Shown here piece after piece: positions 26,033 through 39,952 of a stretch of DNA of 64,000 nucleotides (the first letter of the stretch is position 1; each line of letters starts with the position of its first letter). Location of the stretch: NCBI RefSeq assembly GCF_000315625.1, contig NW_005434631.1, positions 379,891 through 443,890 of the forward strand, written 5' to 3'. Position numbers and translations under genes: made by a program. Source of the DNA: Guillardia theta CCMP2712. Lineage: Eukaryota; Protista; Cryptophyta. The notes under the pieces are model-generated. The model did no database searches. It had not been told where the DNA came from and saw only the letters and a program-made list of their open reading frames with translations.

Positions 26033-27899
26033 TCAGAGGTGCGGGGTTTCGACCTTGCGAGAGAAGCTGTTCATCACCTTCTCCTTCATCGCCTCCACCA
26101 GCTCGGTCACCTGCACAGAAGGTACTTGAAAGTTTTGAGCTGAGGACAGCAGCGATCGACCCATCACGCGTCCCCGCCTGCTCCCCAGCTCTATCAACAT
26201 GTCAAACCAGTCGGTTGCTGCCGACATTATTTGTTGTCCGCGGTGTGCAAGCTTCTTCCACCTGTCCCCCAGCAAGGGCACCGAGTTACAGCTAAACTCC
26301 ACCAGAGCCGCGAGGTTGTCAAACCCGACGCTCATCACGTCCCCATGTGCGAGCGCCTTGAGGCCAGTCACCGGCATCACGTGATGACTTGCTCGCCGCA
26401 GGACCCGCAGGCGATCGCAGCTGAGCTGCAGCATGTCGCCCTTGTCCGTTCCCACCACCAGGAAGTTGGCAGTCACGTCAAGACTCGTCACGCGTCCTCC
26501 GGTCACCTTCACCCGCCGCTCCACTGCCAGCGCCTTGCCTTTGAGGCTGTGAAGCAGCACCAACCCTCCCGTCGGTGTGTTGATGGCGCTACACACACTC
26601 TGACCCTCATCGCAGAAGCGGCAAGCTGCAAGTTCCACTGCATTGCCCTCCATGTCCGTCATGAAATCATCGCACGACGCCTGAGCAAGGCAGGTGTGGC
26701 TGGACAAGTCCCACACGCGAATCGCCTTGTGAGAGGTGGAAACGAGCAAGGAAGATGCTTTGTTGAGCGAGAGGTCCACAATCTCCTCCTCCTCTCCGCC
26801 AGCCTTGCCTGCTCCTGCTAACGTCGACGACAGCTTGAAGGAAGATTTCCCATCTGCCCTCCTCTTGTACAAATGGATCTTCGAACCGTTGGAAACCACC
26901 AGCAAGCCCCCCTGCAATCCCACTGCCAGCCTCTTGCACGCGGACTTGTCAGTAGAATTGTTGATCTCGAGCTTCTGCGAGGACAGGGGTGTCATGCTGC
27001 TGAGTGAGAGCTCGGTGACGCTTCCTCCAGCCAGGCAGAGCATCGAGTTGCTCGTGTTGCTCATCGCCACCGCCTCAACCGCGTCTGATCCGAAGGCTGC
27101 GAAGGCCTTCACGAGCAGCTGCCCTCCATCATCCTCAATCAAGGTCGCTCTGACCATCTGCGTCAGAGCAGTAGAGAACAAGACGAGCGAACCTGTTCGG
27201 CAGCCCCTTTGCCTTATCGCCTCCTCCTCCAGCCACCACGAACCTTCCGGGACCTGCCGCCTCCACACACAAGGGAGGATAGTTGAGCTGCGTGGTGCGC
27301 ATGGGGGGGCTGATCCTCTGCTTGACGGCCTGCGAGCGGGTGAGAGGAAAGGGACTCGATCCTCATCCTCACCTGCTGCGCTCGGTTGCTCATCCAGCTG
27401 GCCATGAGCACAACTGACCCCCACTTGACGAGGCTGCTCGCCAGGTCCCATCAGACATCCTACGGCAGCAGGAGACAAGGCAAGGCACCTTAAGGTAAGA
27501 CGTCCACCCAGCAGCAGCACCTCCAGCACCCTCAGCAGACCCCCTCTCCAGAAGAGCTCCAAGTTGATCAGCCAAACCACAGCTACCATCCACCAAGTCT
27601 CCACCGCTCTAATCGCACTATCAAGCAAAGGAGGTAGAGGCTGTGCGCTGTTCGCTTCGTCTTTCATCTTGATCCATGTTGTTCTCTCGCTCCGATCCTC
27701 CTCATTTTCCTCGCCTCCTCGAAGCCGCACAGCAGCGCTCCTGCTGAAGAGCCGCTTGCGATCAAGAGCATGTAGAGAAGAAGAAGAGATCAAGGCCTGC
27801 AAGAGGTCAACTCTGGTTTGACTTCACTGCTCTCACCTCTGCGTTTGCAATGATGAATGCGCCTAAACAACAACAGAAGAGAAGATTCGAAAGAGTCAT
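26033..27899 (-). CDS. WD40-repeat protein, Sec12/PREB-like, with signal peptide and VRLRGG
   Basis: WD-like segments IVDLSLN..LVSTS..IRVWDL, VTSLDV, HVMPVTGL, VMSVGFDN. A spliced first exon gives MTLSNLLFCCCLGAFIIANAE. The Sec12 assignment is tentative. Confidence 0.65.
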
Positions 27900-30800
27900 C
27901 GCTGAAGTACCCGGCGACTCCAGCCCTAGTAACCTTGATGACCTCACGAGTAGCCGTTAGCGCTGATCGTCCTTGGCACTCCTGCTGCTTTCCCTCCTCC
28001 CCCTCATCAATTCTTCCCTCCCTTCTTCTCTCCCTCCCTCCCTCCCTCCACTATCGTGAATGTTCCTAGTTTTCATCTGCTGACACTCTACCCAAGAAAT
28101 GGTTGATATGTCATCCAATGTGATTGAGACATCCAAAGGGAGAGGAATAAAAGAGAATTTTGAAGAGGGAGGTTATGTCAATCGAAGGAATGCGCGGGAG
28201 AACTAAAGCAAGGGCAAAAGGAACGGCATCACGATAGGCTTATTCCTATCATAATTGACTTCTTCTCACTCCTTTGATCATATCATCTCCCCCTCTCCTC
28301 TCCTCTCTCCCCCTCTCCTCTCCTCTCTCCCCCTCTCCTCTCCTCTCTCTCTCTCCCTCCCTCTCTAACGTCTCATCACAGCATGGCAACTCTCGGGTGG
28401 GTGCTAGGGATACTGAGAGGCAGCAATAGAGTCCGCCTCAGAAACTTGACTGTCAACTGGCAGCATCGCGGCCCGGAAACTCGGCGGCGAGGGCCCCCGG
28501 GCCCGGGCGCCCGGCCGGCCGGTCGGACCGTGACTCGGTGACCGTCCGGGCCTTCAGGCTTAGTGCGGACTGTTTGCTTCACTTGGAGCAGTACCGTCAG
28601 CTCCTTGTCGGGGGCGGGCTGCCCGGCTTGTTCATGCTTCAAGCCGGGAGTCAGAGTCTGCTTGAGGCACTTTTTACCGTTTGTGCGTCGCCGGGAGCAA
28701 ACCGTGGTCACCAGTACTGGCCTCAGCGGGCGCAGGGCAGCCGAGACCGAGACCGCCATTGACGGCGACGATGCCGCACTGCTATACAAGGACACGGAGC
28801 CTCAGAGAGGCCACTGGCTCTTCAAGATGCTTCCACCGCCGCCGTCCGACGGTCCGGCCGTCGGAGGAGTCCGAGTCCGAGACCACTCAGTGACGAGTGG
28901 GGGATGACGGTCTTGCTTGTTCCTGCTTTCCCTTATCATCGAGTAAAACTCAGCTCTCCTCTGGCGAAGACTCCGAGCGGTGACCCCTCGGGCGAGCTTC
29001 GAGTCCTGCTTTGTTTTGCTTGAGGCACTTTTTACCTTCTGCCAGTAAATCCATCGTCAACCGCTGACTCGGCTACCGCTGACTCGGAGGCTAGCGAGGA
29101 GGACTACCCCGAGCGGTACCGTGCTCCTGTGTCCAGCCTCCCTCCGTCCGCTGCCCCAGGCGGACCCCCGGGCAACTAGAGGCAACGCCGTTGCCCGGCT
29201 CCTTGTCGGCGGCTGCCCTTTCTCCGTCCGCGGCCGCCCGCTTTGTGGCGGCAGCGGACGTCTCGACTGACAGTGGTCAGTCGGCTGCCTCCGGGTATCG
29301 CGTCTAAGGGATTTTATTCCTCCTGCATGCTCCTGCTGCTTGTTGCTTGATTGCTTGACCCTTAGGCGGCTTGTGTTTTGTGTGTGATTGTGCAGCTTCT
29401 CGCTGTGCGCTGTGTGCAAGCCGGTTTAGCTTGTTCCTCAGCTTTGTTTTGCTGGCGGTGCCGCGTCTGGGTGCCAGCAGTGCTGGTTCTTTTCGGGCTT
29501 GTGTTTTGTGTGTGTTTGTGCAGCTTCTCGCTGTGCGCTGTGTGCCTGGAGGTTTAGCTTGTTCCTGCTTTGTTTTGCTTGAGGCACTTTTTACCTTCTG
29601 CCACTGAGTAAATCCGTAGTACTTTTGCTTGAGGCACTTTTTACCTTCTGCCAGTAAATCCTATCAGTACTATCCTCCACTTCATTTGGTATCTGGTGGA
29701 GGACATCATTGCTCAGCGCTCGATGCCTCTCGGGGATGTGGCACTTCATTCCTGATGATGGACCTGCTGTTCCATTACCTGCTGCTGAGGTCTTGCCACC
29801 GGCTCACGCAAACGCGCGGCCACCTACCAGTGCCTCACCATGCAGCTGACGCTGGAGGCGCTCCTGCCTGGTGCGAGGCGCATGACTCCCTTGCGCGCGC
29901 AGGCGCTCCTCGAGCCGGAGGACACCTCCTCCTCGGACTTTGTCCGGCGAGTCGCCCGAGGAGTCTTCGCGGGAGGTCCGACGGACTCCGTCGGTGGAAG
30001 CATCAAGAGTGCCGGGCGCTGGAGAGGGCCCTCAGCTGGTCCGAGCTCGCCTGCTTTCTCCCCCCCGACGGGGTCCTTGGGCACTGCTGCAGCGTCGTCG
30101 CCGTCAATGCGGCGGTCTCGGTCTCGGCGGCCGCTGCGCCCGCTGAGGACAGTGAGGAGGACTGTTTGCGAGTCTTGGCTCGCAAACGCGCGGCCACTCA
30201 ATAGGCACAGAGCACACAGAAACAAAGCGGTGTACGGAACACAGCAACAAATACACTGCCAGCCCACGCGGGAAGCCACGTAGACAGCAGAGAGGGGCAA
30301 GCAACGAGCACCGTGATACCGGCACAGCAGCGCGCTCCTCGAGCCAGAGGACACCTCCTCCTCAGACTTTGTCGAGTCCCGGATAAACCTCCTGGCACAC
30401 AGCGCACAGCGAGAAGCTGCACAATCACACACAAAACACAAGCCCGAAAACGTCTCATGAGCACTTCATTCCTCCGCCTGCGCAGCGAAATGTGACCCCT
30501 CTTGTCATGCGCGTCTTCCCTCGCCATGTGCATGCTCGCGCTGCGCTGACCGATCAGCAGCGTGATATCCTCACCTTGCACAGCCGCAGGACACACTCGC
30601 TCAAGTCGCAGGATAGGGTCTTGCAGTCTACCATCTTCGCTCATTTTCCTGAGCGTGACCTGAGCCACTCTCCGATGCGAGTCTCGAGCTACTACCCCCT
30701 CAAGGCCTTCCCGCACCGCTATGCTCAGATGCTCGACTGCTATCTCCATGGCATGCCGATCTGCCAGTGTCCGACGAAATGTGATGGATGTCAGCGCGAG

Positions 30801-31662
30801 CTCGATCCCTCCGTTGCTGCACTGATCAGCAAACGCCGATCCTCCAAGCTTCCCACGGCGCATGACAACCTTACTCGTACGATTCGGTCGATGCTGAACG
30901 AAGCTGGTCTTCTGCTGCTGGTCCGAGCTCGCCTGCTTCCTCCCCGGCATCGGTCGGGTCACGCCGGTCCTTGGGCATTGCTGCGGCGTCGCCGCCGTCA
31001 CGGGCGGCTACCGCTGACTCGGCTACCGCTGACTCGGAGGCTAGCGAGGAGGACTACCTCGAGCGGTACCGTGTTCCAGTGTCCAGCCTCCCTCCGTCCG
31101 CTGGGCCCCAGGCGGACCCCCGGGCAACGCCGGCTCCTTGTCGGCGGCTGCCCTTGCTCCGTCCGCGGCCGCCCGCTTTGTGGCGGCAGCGGACGTCTCG
31201 ACTGACAGTGGTCAGTCGGCTGCCTCCGGGTATCGCGTCTAAGGGATTTTATTCCTCCTGCATGCTCCTGCTGCTTGTTGCTTGATTGCTTGACCCTTAG
31301 GCTGCTTGTCTGCGCGGCTTCGCGCTTGGGCTGGCGATGCCGCGTCTGGGTGCCAGCAGTGCTGGTTCTTTTCGGGCTTGTGTTTTGTGTGTGATTGTGC
31401 AGCTTCTCGCTGTGCGCTGTGTGCCAGGAGGTTTAGCTTGTTCCTGCTTTGTTTTGCTTGAGGCACTTTTTACCTTCTGCCAGTAAATCCATCGTCGCTC
31501 CCATCCTCATGAAGGGCGATATCCACATCCCTGGAATCCGCGATCGAGGGTCCGAGCAGTACGAGGGCTTGATGGCGGACGTGACGTTGGTCCACCCTTA
31601 CATTGGTAGCTCTGCCGACCTGACCAAGTGGGGGGAGGTCCGAACCTCAGTCGACGCCCTCC

Positions 31663-33486
31663 ATGTTCCAGCGTCTGAGAAGATTCGCACAACCGCGCGG
31701 GCCGAGGGAGCAGCGGCAGTCCGGCCAATCGTCTCAGGAGTCTGAGCCTGCTCCTCCGCCGCGACCTACGCTGTCCCTCACCTCTGCGAGCGAGCGCCAA
31801 AGACAGTTGGCGATTCATCAGTTCACTGCGGGTGACCTTCATCGGGCGGTACGGACACTACTGAGCTCCGGCATCTACAGGGCTGAATCTTTTGCTGATC
31901 TTCTTGCTGAAGCACAAGAGAAGTTCCCTGATGGTGCGTCGCCTGCCTTTGGAAGTGCTTCCGCGGCTCATCTCACACAGCAAGCGCTTGCAGTACTGCA
32001 GGTGGATTTGACTGACATCCTCGACACCACTAGCCTGATCCAGGCGATCAAGCGCTACAGCTCCTTTGCGGGGACCGATGACCAAGGGTGGAGGATTCGG
32101 CAACACCTGTCACCCCTTTCTAGTCATCCTGCAGCTTTGAAGCTCTACTGCAAACATATCCTCCAAGGGGTCCTTCTTGGCCAAATGCCGGATCTTCTTA
32201 TTCCTGCCCTGTCAGCCATTCGTCGAGGAGGCAGATTTATTCCCCTCTCCAAGGGAGCTGATAAACCTGGTCTCCGGCCAATTGTCATCGGTTCTGCACA
32301 CCGTCGACTCGCGACGAAGCTTGCTTTGGCAGCGATTCGCTCATTTCTTGACCAGCACTTCCTCTCGTCTCACCCTCGAGCGATTCAGTTCGGACTCGAT
32401 CGAGACGGCTGTCTGAAGTTCTCGCAAACCGCGTCAGCGCTCCTGCCCCTTCACGCTCGCGGTGATGATGAGGATGTTGCCAACCCCACAGTGCTGGTGA
32501 GTTTGGATGCAAAGAACGCCTTCAACTCCCTCGACCGCCAGGCTCTCTTCGATGCAATCGAGGGACGTGCGAGTCGCGACTACTTTGATGGGAGCATCAC
32601 TGAAGGCGCTCGCTTGCCCTCTTGCGAGCATCTCCGTTTGTTCGCCTCCTACCTCTCCAGCTACTATGGAGACTCTGCTGACCTTCGACTCTTTCACAAA
32701 AGTCAGTCAGCCTCCGTTCAGTGTACCTCGGGCGTCTGTCAGGGCAATGTCCCCTCCAGCGTATTTTTCTGCCACAGTATCCACCCCCTGCTCCTCCATA
32801 TCGCAGAGCTTTTTCCCGCTGACAACGTCGTGCTTGTCGGCCCGGGTCCACTCGAGGATGCCGTTGCCGCTACGTCCGCTATGAAGAAGTACATGTTGGC
32901 TGATCTGAAGCTAGAGATTCAACCTCGCGAGTCGAAAGTTTACATCCCCTCCTGGCACCAACACCCTGATCTCTCGCAGCTGAAGAAGAGCCTTAAGCGC
33001 CGTCTCAAGACTCAACTTCTTCACTTCGAGGTCGTCACTGGCGGGATTACACTTGGCGGCCTGCCTATCGGCACGGATGGATTTCATGCTAGTCAGCTCC
33101 GAGCGAAGGTTTCTACCCTCAACGAAGAGCTCTCGAAGCTCGGGCTCGTCCAGCATGGCTTCATGTTCAAGACGCTGGTGAGGGCGAGCCATCTCCAGAA
33201 GCTGCGCTTCTTCCTCCAGGGGTCTTCTCCGTTTCTCCCGCGGGTCCAATCACACACGGGCTGGATTCGTCGCTTTGACCTCTCTGTCCACCTGGCGCTA
33301 GAGAAATACCACCGCTGGCCTTCCTCGCAGTACCTCGCCGCGCATCCCGACCTGCTAGAGTTTGCGAGGTTCAAGCGGGAGCTTCCGCATAGTCGGGGAG
33401 GGGACGAGTTCACGCCCTCTGAGGGTCTACACCCCGCTGTTTACTATACGGCTATCGCTCGCTTCCTCGCTTGGTACAGGCTCTGA
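31663..33486 (+). pseudogene. Non-LTR reverse transcriptase ORF, probably inactive
   Basis: FIPLSKG..GLRPIVIG..RRL, QFG, LVSLDAKNAFNSLDR, GVCQG, LEIQPRESK, LGGLPIG. The YxDD motif is reduced to FPADN. The ORF ends at a frameshift relative to the sister copy at 34660. Confidence 0.85.
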
Positions 33487-34238
33487 CCAGCCGATGTCCC
33501 GGATGTTGCCCTCTCCTCATAGCCTGGACGTTTCCTGCTTTGTTTTGCTTGAGGCACTTTTTACCTTCTGCCAGTAAATCCATTACCTGCCTGTTCACTG
33601 CTCGAGATCTCTCCGTGCCCAGAAGCATCCTCTGGCGACCTTCTTCGTTGAGGCGCACGACTTCGTTCATAATGCTGGAGCGATCCTCTACCGTCGTGTG
33701 AGGGCTCCTGCACCGGCTGCAGATGGCGCGGCGATCCCACCTGCCCCGGCTGCTGTGCCTGATGACGCAGGACGCCCCCCCGCTGTGTGCCTGGAGGTTT
33801 AGCTTGTTGCTGCTTTGTTTTGCTTGAGGCACTTTTTACCTTCTGCCAGTAAATCCACTACTGCCCCCCGGCATCTGTGGTACACATCCCTGGTTTGCGC
33901 GCTCTCGTCGACTCGTCTCATGAGCACTTCATTCCTCCGCCTGCGCAGCGAAATGTGACCCCTCTTGTCATGCGCGTCTTCCCTCGCCATGTGCATGCTC
34001 GCGCTGCGCTGACCGATCAGCAGCGTGATATCCTCACCTTGCACAGCCGCAGGACACACTCGCTCAAGTCGCAGGATAGGGTCTTGCAGTCTACCATCTT
34101 CGCTCATTTTCCTGAGCGTGACCTGAGCCACTCTCCGATGCGAGTCTCGAGCTACTACCCCCTCAAGGCCTGGCCGCACCGCTATGCTCAGATGCTCGAC
34201 TGCTATCTCCATGGCATGCCGATCTGCCATACCAGACG

Positions 34239-37092
34239 GATGCCGTTGCAGCTACGTCCGCTATGAAGAAGTACATGTTGGCTGATCTGAAGCTAGAGAT
34301 TCAACCTCGCGAGTCGAAAGTTTACATCCCCTCCTGGCATCAACACCCTGATCTCTCGCAGCTGAAGAAGAGCCTTAAGCGCCGTCTCAAGACTCAACTT
34401 CTTCACTTCGAGGTCGTCACTGGCGGGATTCTCCGTTTCTCCCGCGGGTCCAATCACAGATTCGTCGCTTTGACCTCTCTGTCCACCTGGCGCTTGAGAA
34501 ATACCACCGCTGGCCTTCCTCGCAGTACCTCGCCGCGCATCCCGACCTGCTAGAGTTTGCGAGGTTCAAGCGGGAGCTTCCGCATAGTCGGGGTGGGGAC
34601 GAGTTCACGCCCTCTGAGGGTCTACACCCCGCTGTTTACTATACGGCTATCGCTCGCTTCCTCGCTTGGTACTCTGACCAGCCCATGTCACGGACCCTGC
34701 CCTCTCCTCATAGCCTGGACGTTCACTGCTCGAGATCTCTCCGTGCCCAGAAGCATCCTCTGGCGACCTTCTTCGTTGAGGCGCACGACTTCGTTCATAA
34801 TGCTGGAGCGATCCTCTACCGTCGTGTGAGGGCTCCTGCACCGGCTGCAGATGGCGCGGCGATCCCACCTGCCCCGGCTGCTGTGCCTGATGACGCAGGC
34901 CGCCCCCCGGCATCTGTGGTACACATCCCTGGTTTGCGCGCTCTCGTCGACTCGTCTCATGAGCACTTCATTCCGCCGCCTGCGCAGCGAAATGTGACCC
35001 CTCTTGTCATGCGCGTCTTCCCTCGCCAGTGCAGCTTCTCGCTGTGGACTGTGTACCTGCCGGTTCAGCTTGTTCCTGCTTTGTTTTGCTTGAGGCACTT
35101 TTTATCTTCTGCCAGTAAATCCTATACCTCGCCATGTGCATGCTCGCGCTGCGCTGACCGATCAGCAGCGTGATATCCTCACCTTGCACAGCCGCAGGAC
35201 ACACTCGCTCAAGTCGCAGGATAGGGTCTTGCAGTCTACCATCTACTGTGTGCCTGCCGGTTCAGCTTGTTCATGCTTTGTTTTGCTTGAGGCACTTTTT
35301 ACCTTCTGCCAGTAAACCCTATGAATCTTCGCTCATTTTCCTGAGCGTGACCTGAGCCACTCTCCGATGCGAGTCTCGAGCTACTACCCCCTCAAGGCCT
35401 TCCCGCACCGCTATGCTCAGATGCTCGACTGCTATCTGGGTGCCAGCAGTGCTGGTTCTTTTCGGGCTTGTGTTTTGTGTGTGATTGTGCAGCTTCTCGC
35501 TGTGGACTGTGTGCCTGCCGGTTCAGCTTGTTCCTGCTTTGTTTTGCTTGAGGCACTTTTTACCTTCTGCCAGTAAATCCTATCACCTTTTGCCAGTAAA
35601 TCCTATCTCCATGGCATGCCGATCTGCCAGTGTCCGACGGAATGTGATGGATGTCAGCGCGAGCTCGACCCCTCCGTTGCTGCACATCCAGACCTGCAAA
35701 CGCCGATCCTCCAAGCTTCCCACGGCGCATGACAACCTTACTCGTACGATTCGGTCGATGCTGAACGAAGCTGGTCTTCAGAGCGTCATCGATACAGTGG
35801 GGGATCCTCGTTCTCGACGGCAGGTACCCTCCCATCCTCATGGCCGCAAGATGAAGGGCGATATCCACATTCCTGGAATCCGCGATCGAGGGTCTGAGTA
35901 AATCCTATACCCTGAGCAGTACGAGGGCTTGATGGCGGACGTGACGTTGGTCCACCCTTACATTGGTAGCTCTGCCGACCTGACCAAGTGGGGGGAGGTC
36001 AACCTCGACGCCCTCCATGTTGCAGCGTCTGAGAAGATTCGCAAACATCGCGCTGCATATGCCATGACTACTCCTCCTCGAGCGTTCATCCCTCTTGCCA
36101 TCTCGACGGACGGTGCCCTGCATCCTGACACCCTCCGCTTCATCTGGTATCTCGCGGACATCATTGCTCAGCGCTCAATGCCTCTTGAGGATGCGGCGTT
36201 TGGTCGGCACTTCGTGCCTGATGACGGACCTGCTGCTGAGGTCTTGGCTCGCAAACGCGCCGCCACCTATCAGCGCCTCACCATGCAGCTGACGCTGGAA
36301 GCGCTTGCGGGCGCAAGCACTTCTCGAGCCAGAGGACAGCTCCTCCTCGGACTTTGTCGAGTCGCCCGAGGAGTCTTCGCCGGAGGTCTCCGACTCCGAT
36401 GGGGGACACCCTTCGAGTGGCCCCGACGATCGGCGCGGAGCTGGCGAGGCGTCTCCGTCCCTCACTGTGACGTCGGGTGCCTCCGGAGAGCTCGACACCA
36501 CTGGGGTGCTTGCTGCTGGTCCGAGCTCGCCTGCTTCCTCCCCGGCATCGGTCGGGTCACGCCGGTCCTTGGGCATTGCCGCGGCGTCGCCGCCGTCACG
36601 GGCGGCTACCACTGACTTGGCTACCGCTGACTCGGAGGCTAGCGAGGAGGACTACCTCGAGCGGTACCGTGTTCATGTGTCCAGCCTCCCTCCGTCCGCT
36701 GCCCCAGGCGGACCCCCGGGCAACGCCGGCTCCTTGTCGGCGGCTGCCCTTTCTCCGTCCGCGGCCGCCCGCTTTGTGGCGGCAGCGGACGTCTCGACTG
36801 ACAGTGGTCAGTCGGCTGCCTCCGGGTATCGCGTCTAAGGGATTTTATTCCTCCTGCATGCTCCTGCTGCTTGTTGCTTGATTGCTTGACCCTTAGGCTG
36901 CTTGTCTGCGCGGCTTCGCGCTTGGGCTGGCGCTGCCGCGTCTGGGTGCCAGCAGTGCTGGTTGTTTTCGGGCTTGTGTTTTGTGTGTGATTGTGCAGCT
37001 TCTCGCTGTGGACTGTGTACCTGCCGGTTCAGCTTGTTCCTGCTTTGTTTTGCTTGAGGCACTTTTTATCTTCTGCCAGTAAATCCTATACC
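34239..37092 (+). mobile_element. 5'-truncated LINE copy with thumb, zinc knuckle, RLE and complete 3' UTR, interrupted by four self-insertions
   Basis: CDGC...HIQTC, AHDNL, KGDIHIPG, ADVTLVHP, EKIRKH, FIPLAISTDG (PD-(D/E)xK type), followed by a 3' region ending CAGTAAATCCTATACC. Confidence 0.85.
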
Positions 37093-39730
37093 GCTCTTGT
37101 CTGGTGCGAGGCGATAATGGATTTACTGGCAGAAGATAAAAAGTGCCTCAAGCAAAACAAAGCAGGAACAAGCTAAACCTCCTGGCACACAGCGCACAGC
37201 GAGAAGCTGCACAATCACACACAAAACACAAGCCCGAAAAGAACCAGCACTGCTGGCACCCAGACGCAGCCGAAGGGTCAAGCAATCAAGCAACAGCTCA
37301 TAGCAACAAGCAGCAGGAGCATGCAGGAGGAATAAAATCCCTTAGACGCGATACCCTCTGGTCTACGGATTTACTGGCAGAAGGTAAAAAGTGCCTCAAG
37401 CAAAACAAAGCAGGAACAAGCTAAACCTCCTGGCACACAGCGCACAGCGAGAAGCTGCACAATCACACACAAAACACAAGCCCGAAAAGAACCAGCACTG
37501 CTGGCAACCAGACGCGTGTGGTTCTGTACGGTACGGTACGTGCGCTTCCCCTCCTGCATGCTCCTGCTGCTTGTTGCTTGATTGCTTGACCCTTCGGCTG
37601 CTTGTCTGCGCGGCTTCGCGCTTGGGCTGGCGTTGCCAGCAGTGCTGGTTCTTTTCGGGCTTGTGTTTTGTGTGTGTTTGTGCAGCTTCTCGCTGTGCGC
37701 TGTGTGCAAGCAGGTTGGAGGTTTAGCTTGTTCCTGCTTTGTTTTGCTTGAGGCACTTTTTACCTTCTGCCAGTAAATCTTCCTTCCTTCCTCTGGCTCG
37801 AGAAGTGCTTGCGCGCGCAAGGGCGTCATGCGCCTCGCACCAGATAGGAGCGCCTCCAGCGTCAGCTGCATGGTGAGGCTGGCGATGCCGGGTCTGCTGA
37901 CGGTTGCCAGCAGTGCTATGTACGGATTTACTGGCAGAAGGTAAAAAGTGCCTCAAGCAAAACAAAGCAGGCCAGCACTGCTGGCACCCAGACGCGGCAC
38001 CAAGCAATCAAGCAACAAGCAGCAGGAGCATGCAGGAGGAAGAAAATCCCTTAGACGCGATACCCGGAGGCAGCCGTGGCTCAGGTCCCGCTCAGGAAAA
38101 TGAGCGAAGATGGTAGACTGCAAGCCAATCGTTGGTGTCGATAACCATGAAAGGATCCAATGCAGGTTTAGCTTGTTCCTGCTTTGTTTTGCTTGAGGCA
38201 CTTTTTACCTTCTGCCAGTAAATCTTTACTGAGCAATGTAGGGTGGAGCTGGGCGCATGCTGACGGTACCGCTCCAAGTAATGCAAACAGTCCTCCTCAC
38301 CTTTACTCGCTTTTTACCTTCTGCCAGTAAATCTCTTGCCCTCCGCATCTCAGTAAAGATTTACTGGCAGAAGGTAAAAAGTGCCTCAAGCAAGCAAAAC
38401 AAAGCAGGAACAAGCTAAACCTGCTTGCACACAGCGCAACCGTCAGCAGACCCGGCATCGCCAGCCCAAGCGCGAAGCCGCGCAGACAAGCAGCAGGAGC
38501 ATGCAGGAGGAATAAAATCCCTTAGACGCAATACCCGGAGGCAGCCGACTGACCACTGTCAGTCGAGACCGTCCGCTGCCTCCACAACTTGAAGCTGGCG
38601 GTCACGGACGGAGAAAGGGCAGCCGCCGACAAGGAGCCTGAGCCGGCGTTGCCCGGGGGTCGGAGCCGGCGTTGCCCGGGGGTCCGCCTGGGGCAGCGGA
38701 CGGAGGGAGGCTGGACACAGGAGCACGGTACCGCTCGAGGTAGTCCTCCTCGCTAGCCTCCGAGTCAGCGGTAGCGCCGTGGCAGAAGAGTACGCTGAAG
38801 CTGACTGATCCTTGTGAAAGAGGCGAAGGTCAGCAGAGTCTTGCTGCTTTCTTCTGCTTGAGGCAAAGGTGAAAAGCGGCAACAGCTGAGGACATTTAGG
38901 AGGAGCTGGAGAGCCTGATAGGAGGCGAACAACCGCCGGGAGAGCCTTGCTCGGAGAGCCTTGCTTTTGTCACAGTGTGTGTTTGTGCAGCTTCTCGCTG
39001 TGCGCTGTGTGCAAGCAGTTTTCGCTTGTTCCTGCTTTGTTTTGCTTGAGGCACTTTTTACCTTCTGCCAGTAAATCTTCGAATCTCGGAGGCTCGCAAC
39101 TGACGTCGGACCGTGCGGGCAAAACCGTACCGTACGGCGATGATGCTCCCCGGTCAAACTTTGAATAGCCCTGCCTGCGAACGAGTCGCCCTTCCCTCGA
39201 TGGAGTGGCATCACATGATGCCTCGTAGGAGCGCGGACGCGGTTTGTGACCGTCGGGGCCTTGGTCATCGGTGCCCGGCCCCGGCCGTCGGATTGAACTT
39301 AGGAGTGCCGCTGCTGTACGGTACGGTAGCGCTTGATCGCCGGGACGCTTCAGTAAGAAGATTAGCAAGAGTGTCAGCATGACGGTCTTGCTTGTTCCTG
39401 CTTTCTTCTGCTTGAGCACTGAAGTTTTACCTTATTAGTGCAAGGAACTTGAACCCGTTCACAGACTCAGAGGCCCTCGGAGGATCGGGCCCGGCCCTCT
39501 CAGTTAACGCCGGTTCGCTCGGATCCGACTCTGACGGTCTAGAATGTGCCGGTGCCGGCCTGGGCCTTGTTCTCCACCAGGAGGGGTACACCGTCCATAA
39601 TTACCTTATGTACCGGTATTTTTTAGTAGTGAGATTGGGGGTAGAGGGAGGACAGAGGAGTCAACGGGTAGGTGGGGGTGATATGTAGTTGTCCCTTCGC
39701 ACTGGCTCAACATGCGGTAGGTAGTCGACA

Positions 39731-39843
39731 AGAGGAAGAGGAAGAGGAAGAGGAAGAGGAAGAGGAAGAGGAAGAGGAAGAGGAAGAGGAAGAGGAAGAG
39801 GAAGAGGAAGAGGAAGAGGAAGAGGAAGAGGAAGAGGAAGAAG
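39731..39843. repeat. (GAGGAA)n microsatellite
   Basis: About 18 perfect hexamers. Confidence 0.95.
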
Positions 39844-39952
39844 AGCCGGGAAGATTGAAGAGACAAAGTGAAGGACCAGAGGAGCTGGCAAGAGAAACGG
39901 AGGTCAAGGAGAAATCATCTGATCAATACTGGAATTTCCTGCTAGAGCTACT

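Follow-up and report, generated by a model that had tools for sequence, protein, structure and literature searches.

We analysed a stretch of 64,000 nucleotides (nt) from the cryptophyte Guillardia theta CCMP2712 (the window; C43:379891–443890 of an 87.1-Mb assembly with 669 scaffolds, C43 being contig NW_005434631.1). We find that an island at 28376..39460 of this window is a nest of one long interspersed nuclear element (LINE) family. Integration of the family is aimed almost only at DNA already made of same-family copies, in either orientation, at many positions and on all chromosomes. We hold with high confidence that the nests arise by target-primed reverse transcription of the element into itself, and we consider it rather likely that they are the small regional centromeres (∼1–25 kb) of G. 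theta.

In the window, a 34-nt terminus of the element (GCTTGAGG...CAGTAAATC) has 16 matches with at most three mismatches, all confined to 29018–39077. Twelve are on the + strand (ends at 29051, 29660, 31489, 33580, 33855, 35121, 35318, 35579, 37085, 37779, 38224, and 39077) and four on the − strand (37120, 37368, 37925, and 38358). None of 100 dinucleotide-preserving shuffles contains any match, so that none is expected by chance. A search with an 11-nt core adds short terminus fragments ending at 35602 and 38333, and direct reading of the sequence adds a variant terminus ending at 29615 and a tiny fragment at ∼35905. By these three routes all the end positions listed in the original prediction, which had been made from the letters of the window alone, were recovered to within 1–2 nt. 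The remaining 53 kb of the window contain nothing of the element, as had been claimed, and the predicted fixed 3′ end with variable 5′ truncation is confirmed, the 5′ extent ranging from ∼8 nt to >2.8 kb. The core of the nest (29004–39077) is 92% derived from one LINE family, and its edges (28376–29003 and 39078–39460) hold diverged remnants that belong either to the same subfamily or to an older one. The island is gap-free (the sole N runs of the window lie at 3345–5321) and is flanked by unique DNA on both sides, with gene-bearing unique DNA beginning within ∼0.6 kb to the left of the nest (WD40 open reading frame (ORF) at 26033–27802).

Genome-wide, the terminus occurs 683 times. In the first 100 of these 683 termini, 22 of the 23 largest scaffolds have one tight cluster each (1–23 kb), which is the pattern of roughly one dense cluster per chromosome that the original prediction had called for. 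Matches to the reverse transcriptase (RT)-coding region likewise fall in one locality per contig on ∼45 contigs. An exact 32-mer of the youngest subfamily has 77 occurrences on 46 contigs, in one locality each, coinciding with the known nest wherever this was mapped; one of them, at C43:414984, corresponds to position 35094 of the window and lies within an insertion at 35029..35126 described below. The spread of the exact 32-mer over 46 contigs thus indicates that the family moves between chromosomes yet lands in nests. A local (cis) origin was considered as the main mode of insertion and rejected (within- versus between-nest distance 3.4 versus 4.1; 104 termini, permutation p = 0.08). At least two further LINE families with a restriction-like endonuclease (RLE), 36–47% identical to the nest family, are dispersed on the chromosome arms of the same genome, far from the nests (C19:796730–800500, C22:193553–197260, C4:598680–602105, and C43:328194–329618, among others), and some of these copies have intact ORFs of 1350–1400 amino acids. 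Since these sibling families and other repeats are dispersed, confinement is a property of the nest family and not a general effect of selection.

Scaffold ends carry the telomere repeat (TTTAGGG)n in the expected orientation, and TTAGGG repeats are absent from them. Scaffolds C2, C5, C7, and C12 (1.09–1.30 Mb) have (TTTAGGG)n at both ends and are therefore complete chromosomes. Each contains exactly one nest, at relative positions of 0.56, 0.57, 0.25, and 0.81, respectively, so that exactly one locus per chromosome is found on all four telomere-to-telomere scaffolds. Four complete chromosomes of this size imply a total of ∼70 for the 87-Mb genome. The telomere repeat is also seen on C3, C4, C10, and C21. 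Blocks of it occur several kb inside the ends as well, with two blocks 5 kb apart on C2 (1291598–1296607) and blocks at 10 and 38 kb on C7 (10071–38236).

To describe individual insertions we used as a ruler two natural element copies joined together, which serves for coordinates only, and collected 152 termini from 30 loci (the window and 29 others, most nests being analysed on their left half only). On the ruler, the last 250 nt are represented ∼40 times as often as the first 500 nt. Fifty insertions (47 unique) sit inside an otherwise contiguous host copy, and their target duplications are mostly 4–7 bp (mode 7, range 0–11; accuracy about ±3 bp). Microhomology at the 5′ junction is typically 1–4 nt, both orientations relative to the host copy are used (27:20), and the host positions extend from ruler 1332 to 5226. 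The median insert length is 74 nt. At the 3′ junction CTAT follows AAATC in 54 of 104 copies, and almost without exception in the youngest (TATC) subfamily; a further few non-host bases usually follow CTAT. The real 3′ end is thus usually AAATC plus CTAT plus extra untemplated bases, which refines the terminus as first described. An alignment of 41 insertion sites shows no consensus around them. Footprints of this kind are left by target-primed reverse transcription that adds untemplated bases as it initiates and breaks off very early. Reverse transcription would begin at the 3′ end of the RNA, often after a few untemplated bases, and the short median insert would arise because synthesis usually aborts very early.

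The nests are composed to 85–100% of the nest family, and element DNA lies immediately downstream in 116 of 122 testable copies (95%). Together with the lack of a shared target, these downstream flanks uphold the proposal that the family targets its own copies and not a sequence. Sequence identity is lower at the nest edges (median 88.9%) than further in (95.8%; 18 nests, rho = 0.38, p = 1.5e-6), and the island in the window shows the same gradient, with 80–90% identity at both edges and 96–98% in the core. Edge fragments are older than inner ones, as expected from repeated insertion into existing copies; nests would grow from the inside and push older copies to the edges. A second nest-specific repeat was considered for a 1.5-kb non-LINE block in the C1 nest and rejected, as the block consists of ordinary dispersed repeats. 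It contains two or three unrelated ones (L011:6490–7970, corresponding to C1:686490–687970), of which one of ∼290 nt has many copies at 95–98% identity.

Independent sequence data contain the same architecture. The metagenome contig ERZ930071 carries the nest family with two adjacent micro-insertions, and contigs from independent sequencing runs show the terminus fused, with a few additional letters in between, to many positions inside the element. One contig of run X9 skips from 33773 to 33863, with 7 letters that fit both sides, and represents the empty site of the insertion at 33783–33862 in another copy; it carries the 7-bp duplication sequence once. A 65-nt contig of run X1 spans 35556–35620 without mismatch. 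Three of the four runs yielded short contigs only, so that they cover local junctions and not the large-scale order of the island.

We drew the anatomy of the element from more complete copies elsewhere in the genome. It totals ∼5.85 kb, and full-length copies share a common 5′ end (GGTTTTCCTGCTTTCTGTGTTCC). A single long ORF encodes a conserved helical N-terminal region, a poly-Q tract, the RT, a linker, a CCHC knuckle (C-x-C...HH-x3-C), a PD-(D/E)xK-type endonuclease (KGD...ADVTLVHP...K), and a Ser/acidic tail. A 3′ untranslated region (UTR) of ∼260 nt closes the element; there is no poly(A), and copies end in ...GCCAGTAAATC, usually then CTAT. Upstream of the ruler start only ∼600 nt remain, mostly with stops in all frames. 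The poly-Q tract is encoded by (CAG)n, a long repeat that varies in length and lies directly 5′ of the RT (L005:700–1500 and L002:844–1500), and a long copy in the window is truncated immediately after it (31688). A structured 3′ UTR was considered and rejected, since shuffled sequences fold as well as the last 253 nt (z = −0.23).

The RT ORF in the window (31663–33486) matches only G. theta CCMP2712 proteins and two metagenome proteins (92–97% identity). Pfam RVT_1 scores just under its curated cutoff on a 947-amino-acid copy (E = 1.5e-6), and a single-sequence search of solved structures with this protein returned no match, so that a family profile was required. A profile of 12 family members finds R2 proteins with E = 8e-14, compared with 2e-3 for L1 ORF2p, and a co-linear second stretch aligns C..C..H...C, (K/R)GD, and DVT with the R2 knuckle, KPD, and DVT. 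An AlphaFold model (predicted local distance difference test score (pLDDT) 78, predicted template modeling score (pTM) 0.74) returns R2Tg and R2Bm first in a Foldseek search (∼1000 columns including the C terminus, E = 1e-18 to 1e-15), ahead of L1 ORF2p. The best matches of profile and model to R2, combined with the CCHC and PD...DVT motifs that align with the R2 endonuclease, point to an RLE-type, R2-like non-long terminal repeat (LTR) retrotransposon, a predicted affiliation at the level of the RLE group and not of a clade, and they agree with the RLE-type LINE named in the original prediction. The endonuclease alignment is weak when taken alone (independent E-value 0.28), which counts against this assignment. 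Pfam detects no apurinic/apyrimidinic (AP; exo-endo-phosphatase) endonuclease in the N-terminal 333 amino acids or in the RT-to-RLE part, and no zinc finger or Myb domain in the N-terminal regions of the nest family or of four relatives. The element does not belong to the R2 clade in the strict sense, as it is without the N-terminal zinc-finger/Myb domains and its target is the element itself and not 28S ribosomal DNA. In motif C of the RT it has YADN where YADD/FADD is usual (residues 343–347 of the metagenome protein P0002), with the Asp invariant and the Asn nearly invariant among 12 members from G. theta and metagenomes; despite this motif the family has clearly been recently active. A distant metagenome relative of 1577 amino acids (P0077) has an N-terminal ubiquitin C-terminal hydrolase (UCH; PF00443, E = 4e-29) before its RT-RLE body, which recalls the protease-bearing NeSL-like elements and is a lead only.

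The nests resemble those of Zepp and ZeppL in Chlorella, Coccomyxa subellipsoidea, and Chlamydomonas reinhardtii, in that they are nested clusters of similar sizes, one per chromosome, with very low expression and with older copies serving as targets for new ones. ZeppL elements are L1-clade LINEs that carry an AP endonuclease at the N terminus and end in poly(A). The nest element in contrast has a C-terminal RLE, neither an AP endonuclease nor poly(A), and R2 proteins as its nearest solved relatives; its host belongs to another eukaryotic supergroup, and its nest inserts are extremely short (median 74 nt). It is thus not a Zepp/ZeppL element, the likeness being one of resemblance and not of membership, and as ZeppL is of the L1 type and the nest element R2-like, the likeness would be convergence. 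Zepp clusters in Coccomyxa measure 1.5–42 kb and occur strictly once per chromosome (PMC3446292), and the ZeppL regions of Chlamydomonas are bound by CENH3 (bioRxiv 10.1101/2025.03.28.645958).

With R2, R4, CRE, SLACS, NeSL, and Utopia the element shares the order RT-linker-CCHC-PD-(D/E)xK, a single ORF, the lack of poly(A), untemplated bases at the 3′ junction, and target-primed reverse transcription. For most RLE elements the integration target is a single specific repetitive sequence, for example ribosomal RNA genes or microsatellites (PMC4640811), and the nest family is therefore unusual within its own group: it has no consensus target, inserts into its own copies in both orientations, carries YADN where YADD is the rule, and has no N-terminal zinc finger or Myb domain by Pfam. 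A parallel is offered by the plant CR chromoviruses and the Dictyostelium element DIRS-1, in which one retroelement family makes up the centromere regions of all chromosomes and is found only there. These are centromere-targeted LTR or tyrosine-recombinase elements, whose targeting is based on integrase or recombinase, whereas the nest element is a LINE with a restriction-like endonuclease. Full-text literature searches found no paper on cryptophyte nuclear centromeres or on the nest family.

The insertion sites extend over 4 kb of the element, in both orientations and with no shared motif, which argues against sequence recognition or simple RNA-DNA guidance. We infer that what the element recognises on its own copies would be a feature of chromatin or a bound protein and not DNA sequence. 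As there is exactly one nest per chromosome, this chromatin would most likely be centromeric. Had nests been seeded at random and then grown by self-homing, 22 of 23 scaffolds could not each carry exactly one; a pre-existing feature of each chromosome is therefore needed, and the obvious candidate for a feature unique to each chromosome is the centromere. We lean slightly toward the fuller account in which an R2-like RLE LINE gave up sequence-specific targeting, homes to centromeric chromatin, and builds whole candidate centromeres on ∼60–80 chromosomes (∼1 Mb). Several observations weigh against the explanation as a whole. The distribution was read from the first 100 of the 683 listed termini (scaffolds C1–C23), and among these C16 is without a nest. 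On C21 a single stray copy lies 60 kb away from the nest, ∼12 kb of other DNA divides the nest on C1, and many nests contain assembly gaps, which makes nest sizes and internal order uncertain. The endonuclease is also not fully sequence-blind, since the first three duplicated bases are pyrimidines in 73–80% of events and pairs of independent same-strand events ≤2 nt apart number 5 where 1.0 is expected (P = 0.007); the nuclease has local preferences and no recognition sequence. Moreover, LINE DNA in nests holds 1.4 termini per kb and the non-LINE DNA enclosed in them carries none (four internal stretches, ∼4.9 kb, ∼7 expected). This sparing is only suggestive, as the stretches may be of any age, and recognition of the copies themselves explains it no less well than would recognition of a wider centromeric domain. 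That the nests are centromeres is, finally, something we infer.

Homing purely on the element's own DNA, with one rare off-target seed per chromosome and self-targeting that kept a single nest, would account for the 95% of flanks that are element DNA, for the spared non-LINE DNA, and for the weak site recurrence and pyrimidine bias at the nick. We nevertheless regard it as improbable: random seeding with a mean of one gives exactly one nest with a probability of 0.37 per chromosome and 22 of 23 with ∼1e-9, and the lack of a consensus, the use of both orientations, and the spread of sites over 4 kb are unlike sequence-specific RLE elements such as R2. The nests could instead be silent safe havens, one heterochromatic island per chromosome, reached via a heterochromatin mark or small-RNA-directed chromatin and without a role in segregation. 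All the targeting evidence fits this reading equally well, and the very low RNA coverage (44 reads in ∼6% of a large RNA run) suits silent chromatin. To our knowledge, however, nothing but a centromere is present exactly once on every chromosome. The single nest on 4/4 telomere-to-telomere and 22/23 largest scaffolds is a centromere-like pattern, and the closest precedent, ZeppL, is bound by CENH3; we thus judge non-centromeric havens unlikely, while giving them more weight than homing on sequence.

Far less credible is random insertion followed by purifying selection that leaves copies only in dispensable islands of a gene-dense genome. The genome is indeed compact, with genes within 1 kb of the island, but related RLE LINE families and other repeats are dispersed on the same chromosomes, only one of the first 100 termini lies outside a cluster, and even very young copies (97–100% identity) are confined, all 77 exact 32-mers lying at a single locality per contig. 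We attach the least weight of all to an artefact, be it a collapsed or chimeric repeat assembly or template-switch chimeras from sequencing. The scaffold assembly is an older one and many nests contain N gaps; the island in the window, however, is gap-free with unique flanks on both sides, insertions with duplications occur inside otherwise contiguous hosts, and independent material, both a metagenome contig and contigs from sequencing runs, has the same architecture.

If the nests are centromeres, this would be the first identification of nuclear centromeres in a cryptophyte. It would provide a chromosome map for G. theta, a reference genome for secondary endosymbiosis, with many chromosomes of ∼1.2 Mb and short, LINE-only centromeres. 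It would also add a second, independent LINE family that builds centromeres, mechanistically different from the L1-type ZeppL and belonging to the R2-like branch, the members of which are otherwise known for strict sequence specificity. Whether centromere-specific retroelements read chromatin rather than DNA would become testable. The enzyme, whose choice of target is apparently not dictated by DNA sequence, may for that reason interest engineers of R2 systems, and the short centromere candidates could aid the design of artificial chromosomes for cryptophytes.

Tiling of the island on the ruler resolves it into a mosaic of nested copies. Its center is formed by two long copies on the + strand, into which the element's own 3′ tip has inserted seven times, each of these micro-insertions being accompanied by a duplication of the host copy. 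The first long copy (31688..34229; ruler 1382–3773) is 5′-truncated, 96.6% identical to the ruler copy, and contains the RT domain, the ORF of which (31663–33486) has a small deletion at motif C. The second (34238..37090; ruler 2565–2757 and 2934–5256) continues from the end of the RT through the linker, the CCHC knuckle (∼35620–35700), the RLE (∼35850–36300), and the Ser/acidic tail to the 3′ UTR (36838–37085) and the terminus plus CTATA at its end.

All seven micro-insertions are on the + strand, two in the first copy and five in the second. The former consist of 49 nt of the 3′ end with a 12-nt tail (CATTACCTGCCT) and the duplication GTT (33528..33592), and of 73 nt with the tail CACTACT and the 7-bp duplication GCCCCCC (33783..33862). 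In the second copy, an insertion of the young TATC subfamily (35029..35126) comprises 93 nt with the tail CTATA and a 5–8-bp duplication (CCTCG(CCA)), and another (35245..35324) comprises 74 nt with the tail CTATGA and the duplication ATCT. Two consecutive insertions share a single site (35435..35606), with 145 nt plus CTAT followed by ∼18 nt plus CTAT, and the duplication CTATCTC. The smallest, identified by direct reading, lies inside the RLE-coding region (35886..35910) and consists of ∼8 nt of the terminus plus CTAT and ACCC.

To the left of the two long copies, an RLE-coding fragment (31509..31698, + strand; ruler 4000–4184) abuts the 5′ end of the first, and is preceded by an internally deleted copy (30451..31490, + strand; ruler 3458–3928 joined to 4674–5252), which is 96% identical to the ruler and ends at the terminus. 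The left nest flank (29004..30450) contains three 3′-end copies (ends at 29051, 29615, and 29660) and then older fragments of 69–91% identity, with a mean of 81% in the 29–30-kb bin. The right flank (37120..39077) contains 3′-end copies in both orientations with identities of mostly 72–90%, on the − strand at 37120–37356, 37368–37516, 37925–38124, and 38358–38775 and on the + strand at 37550–37779, 38191–38224, 38310–38333, and 38975–39077. A diverged version of the terminus (GCTTGTTCCTGCTTTCTTCTGCTTGAG-CACTGAAGTTTTACCTTATTAGTGC), probably a relic of an older subfamily, is present at both outer edges of the island (28905–28930 and 39385–39445). The island is bordered by a long (CT-rich)n tract (28250–28360) and a (GAA)n microsatellite (39730–39850), and such tracts are common genome-wide. 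Flanking microsatellites were considered as a landmark of nests and rejected, the longest purine/pyrimidine run having a median of 14 at 18 other nest edges compared with 16 in control DNA.

RNA reads from the family are very sparse, and the 44 reads are too thin to define a transcript or its strand. The metagenome protein P0002 was considered as evidence of expression and rejected, because it is encoded on a metagenome contig and not on a transcript. Several metagenome runs from lake water, runoff, and other aquatic sources hold more than half of the sampled 31-mers of window positions 33400–37200, which is unexpected for a marine alga such as G. theta; these matches may come from close relatives, from its use as a feed or reference organism, or from contamination.

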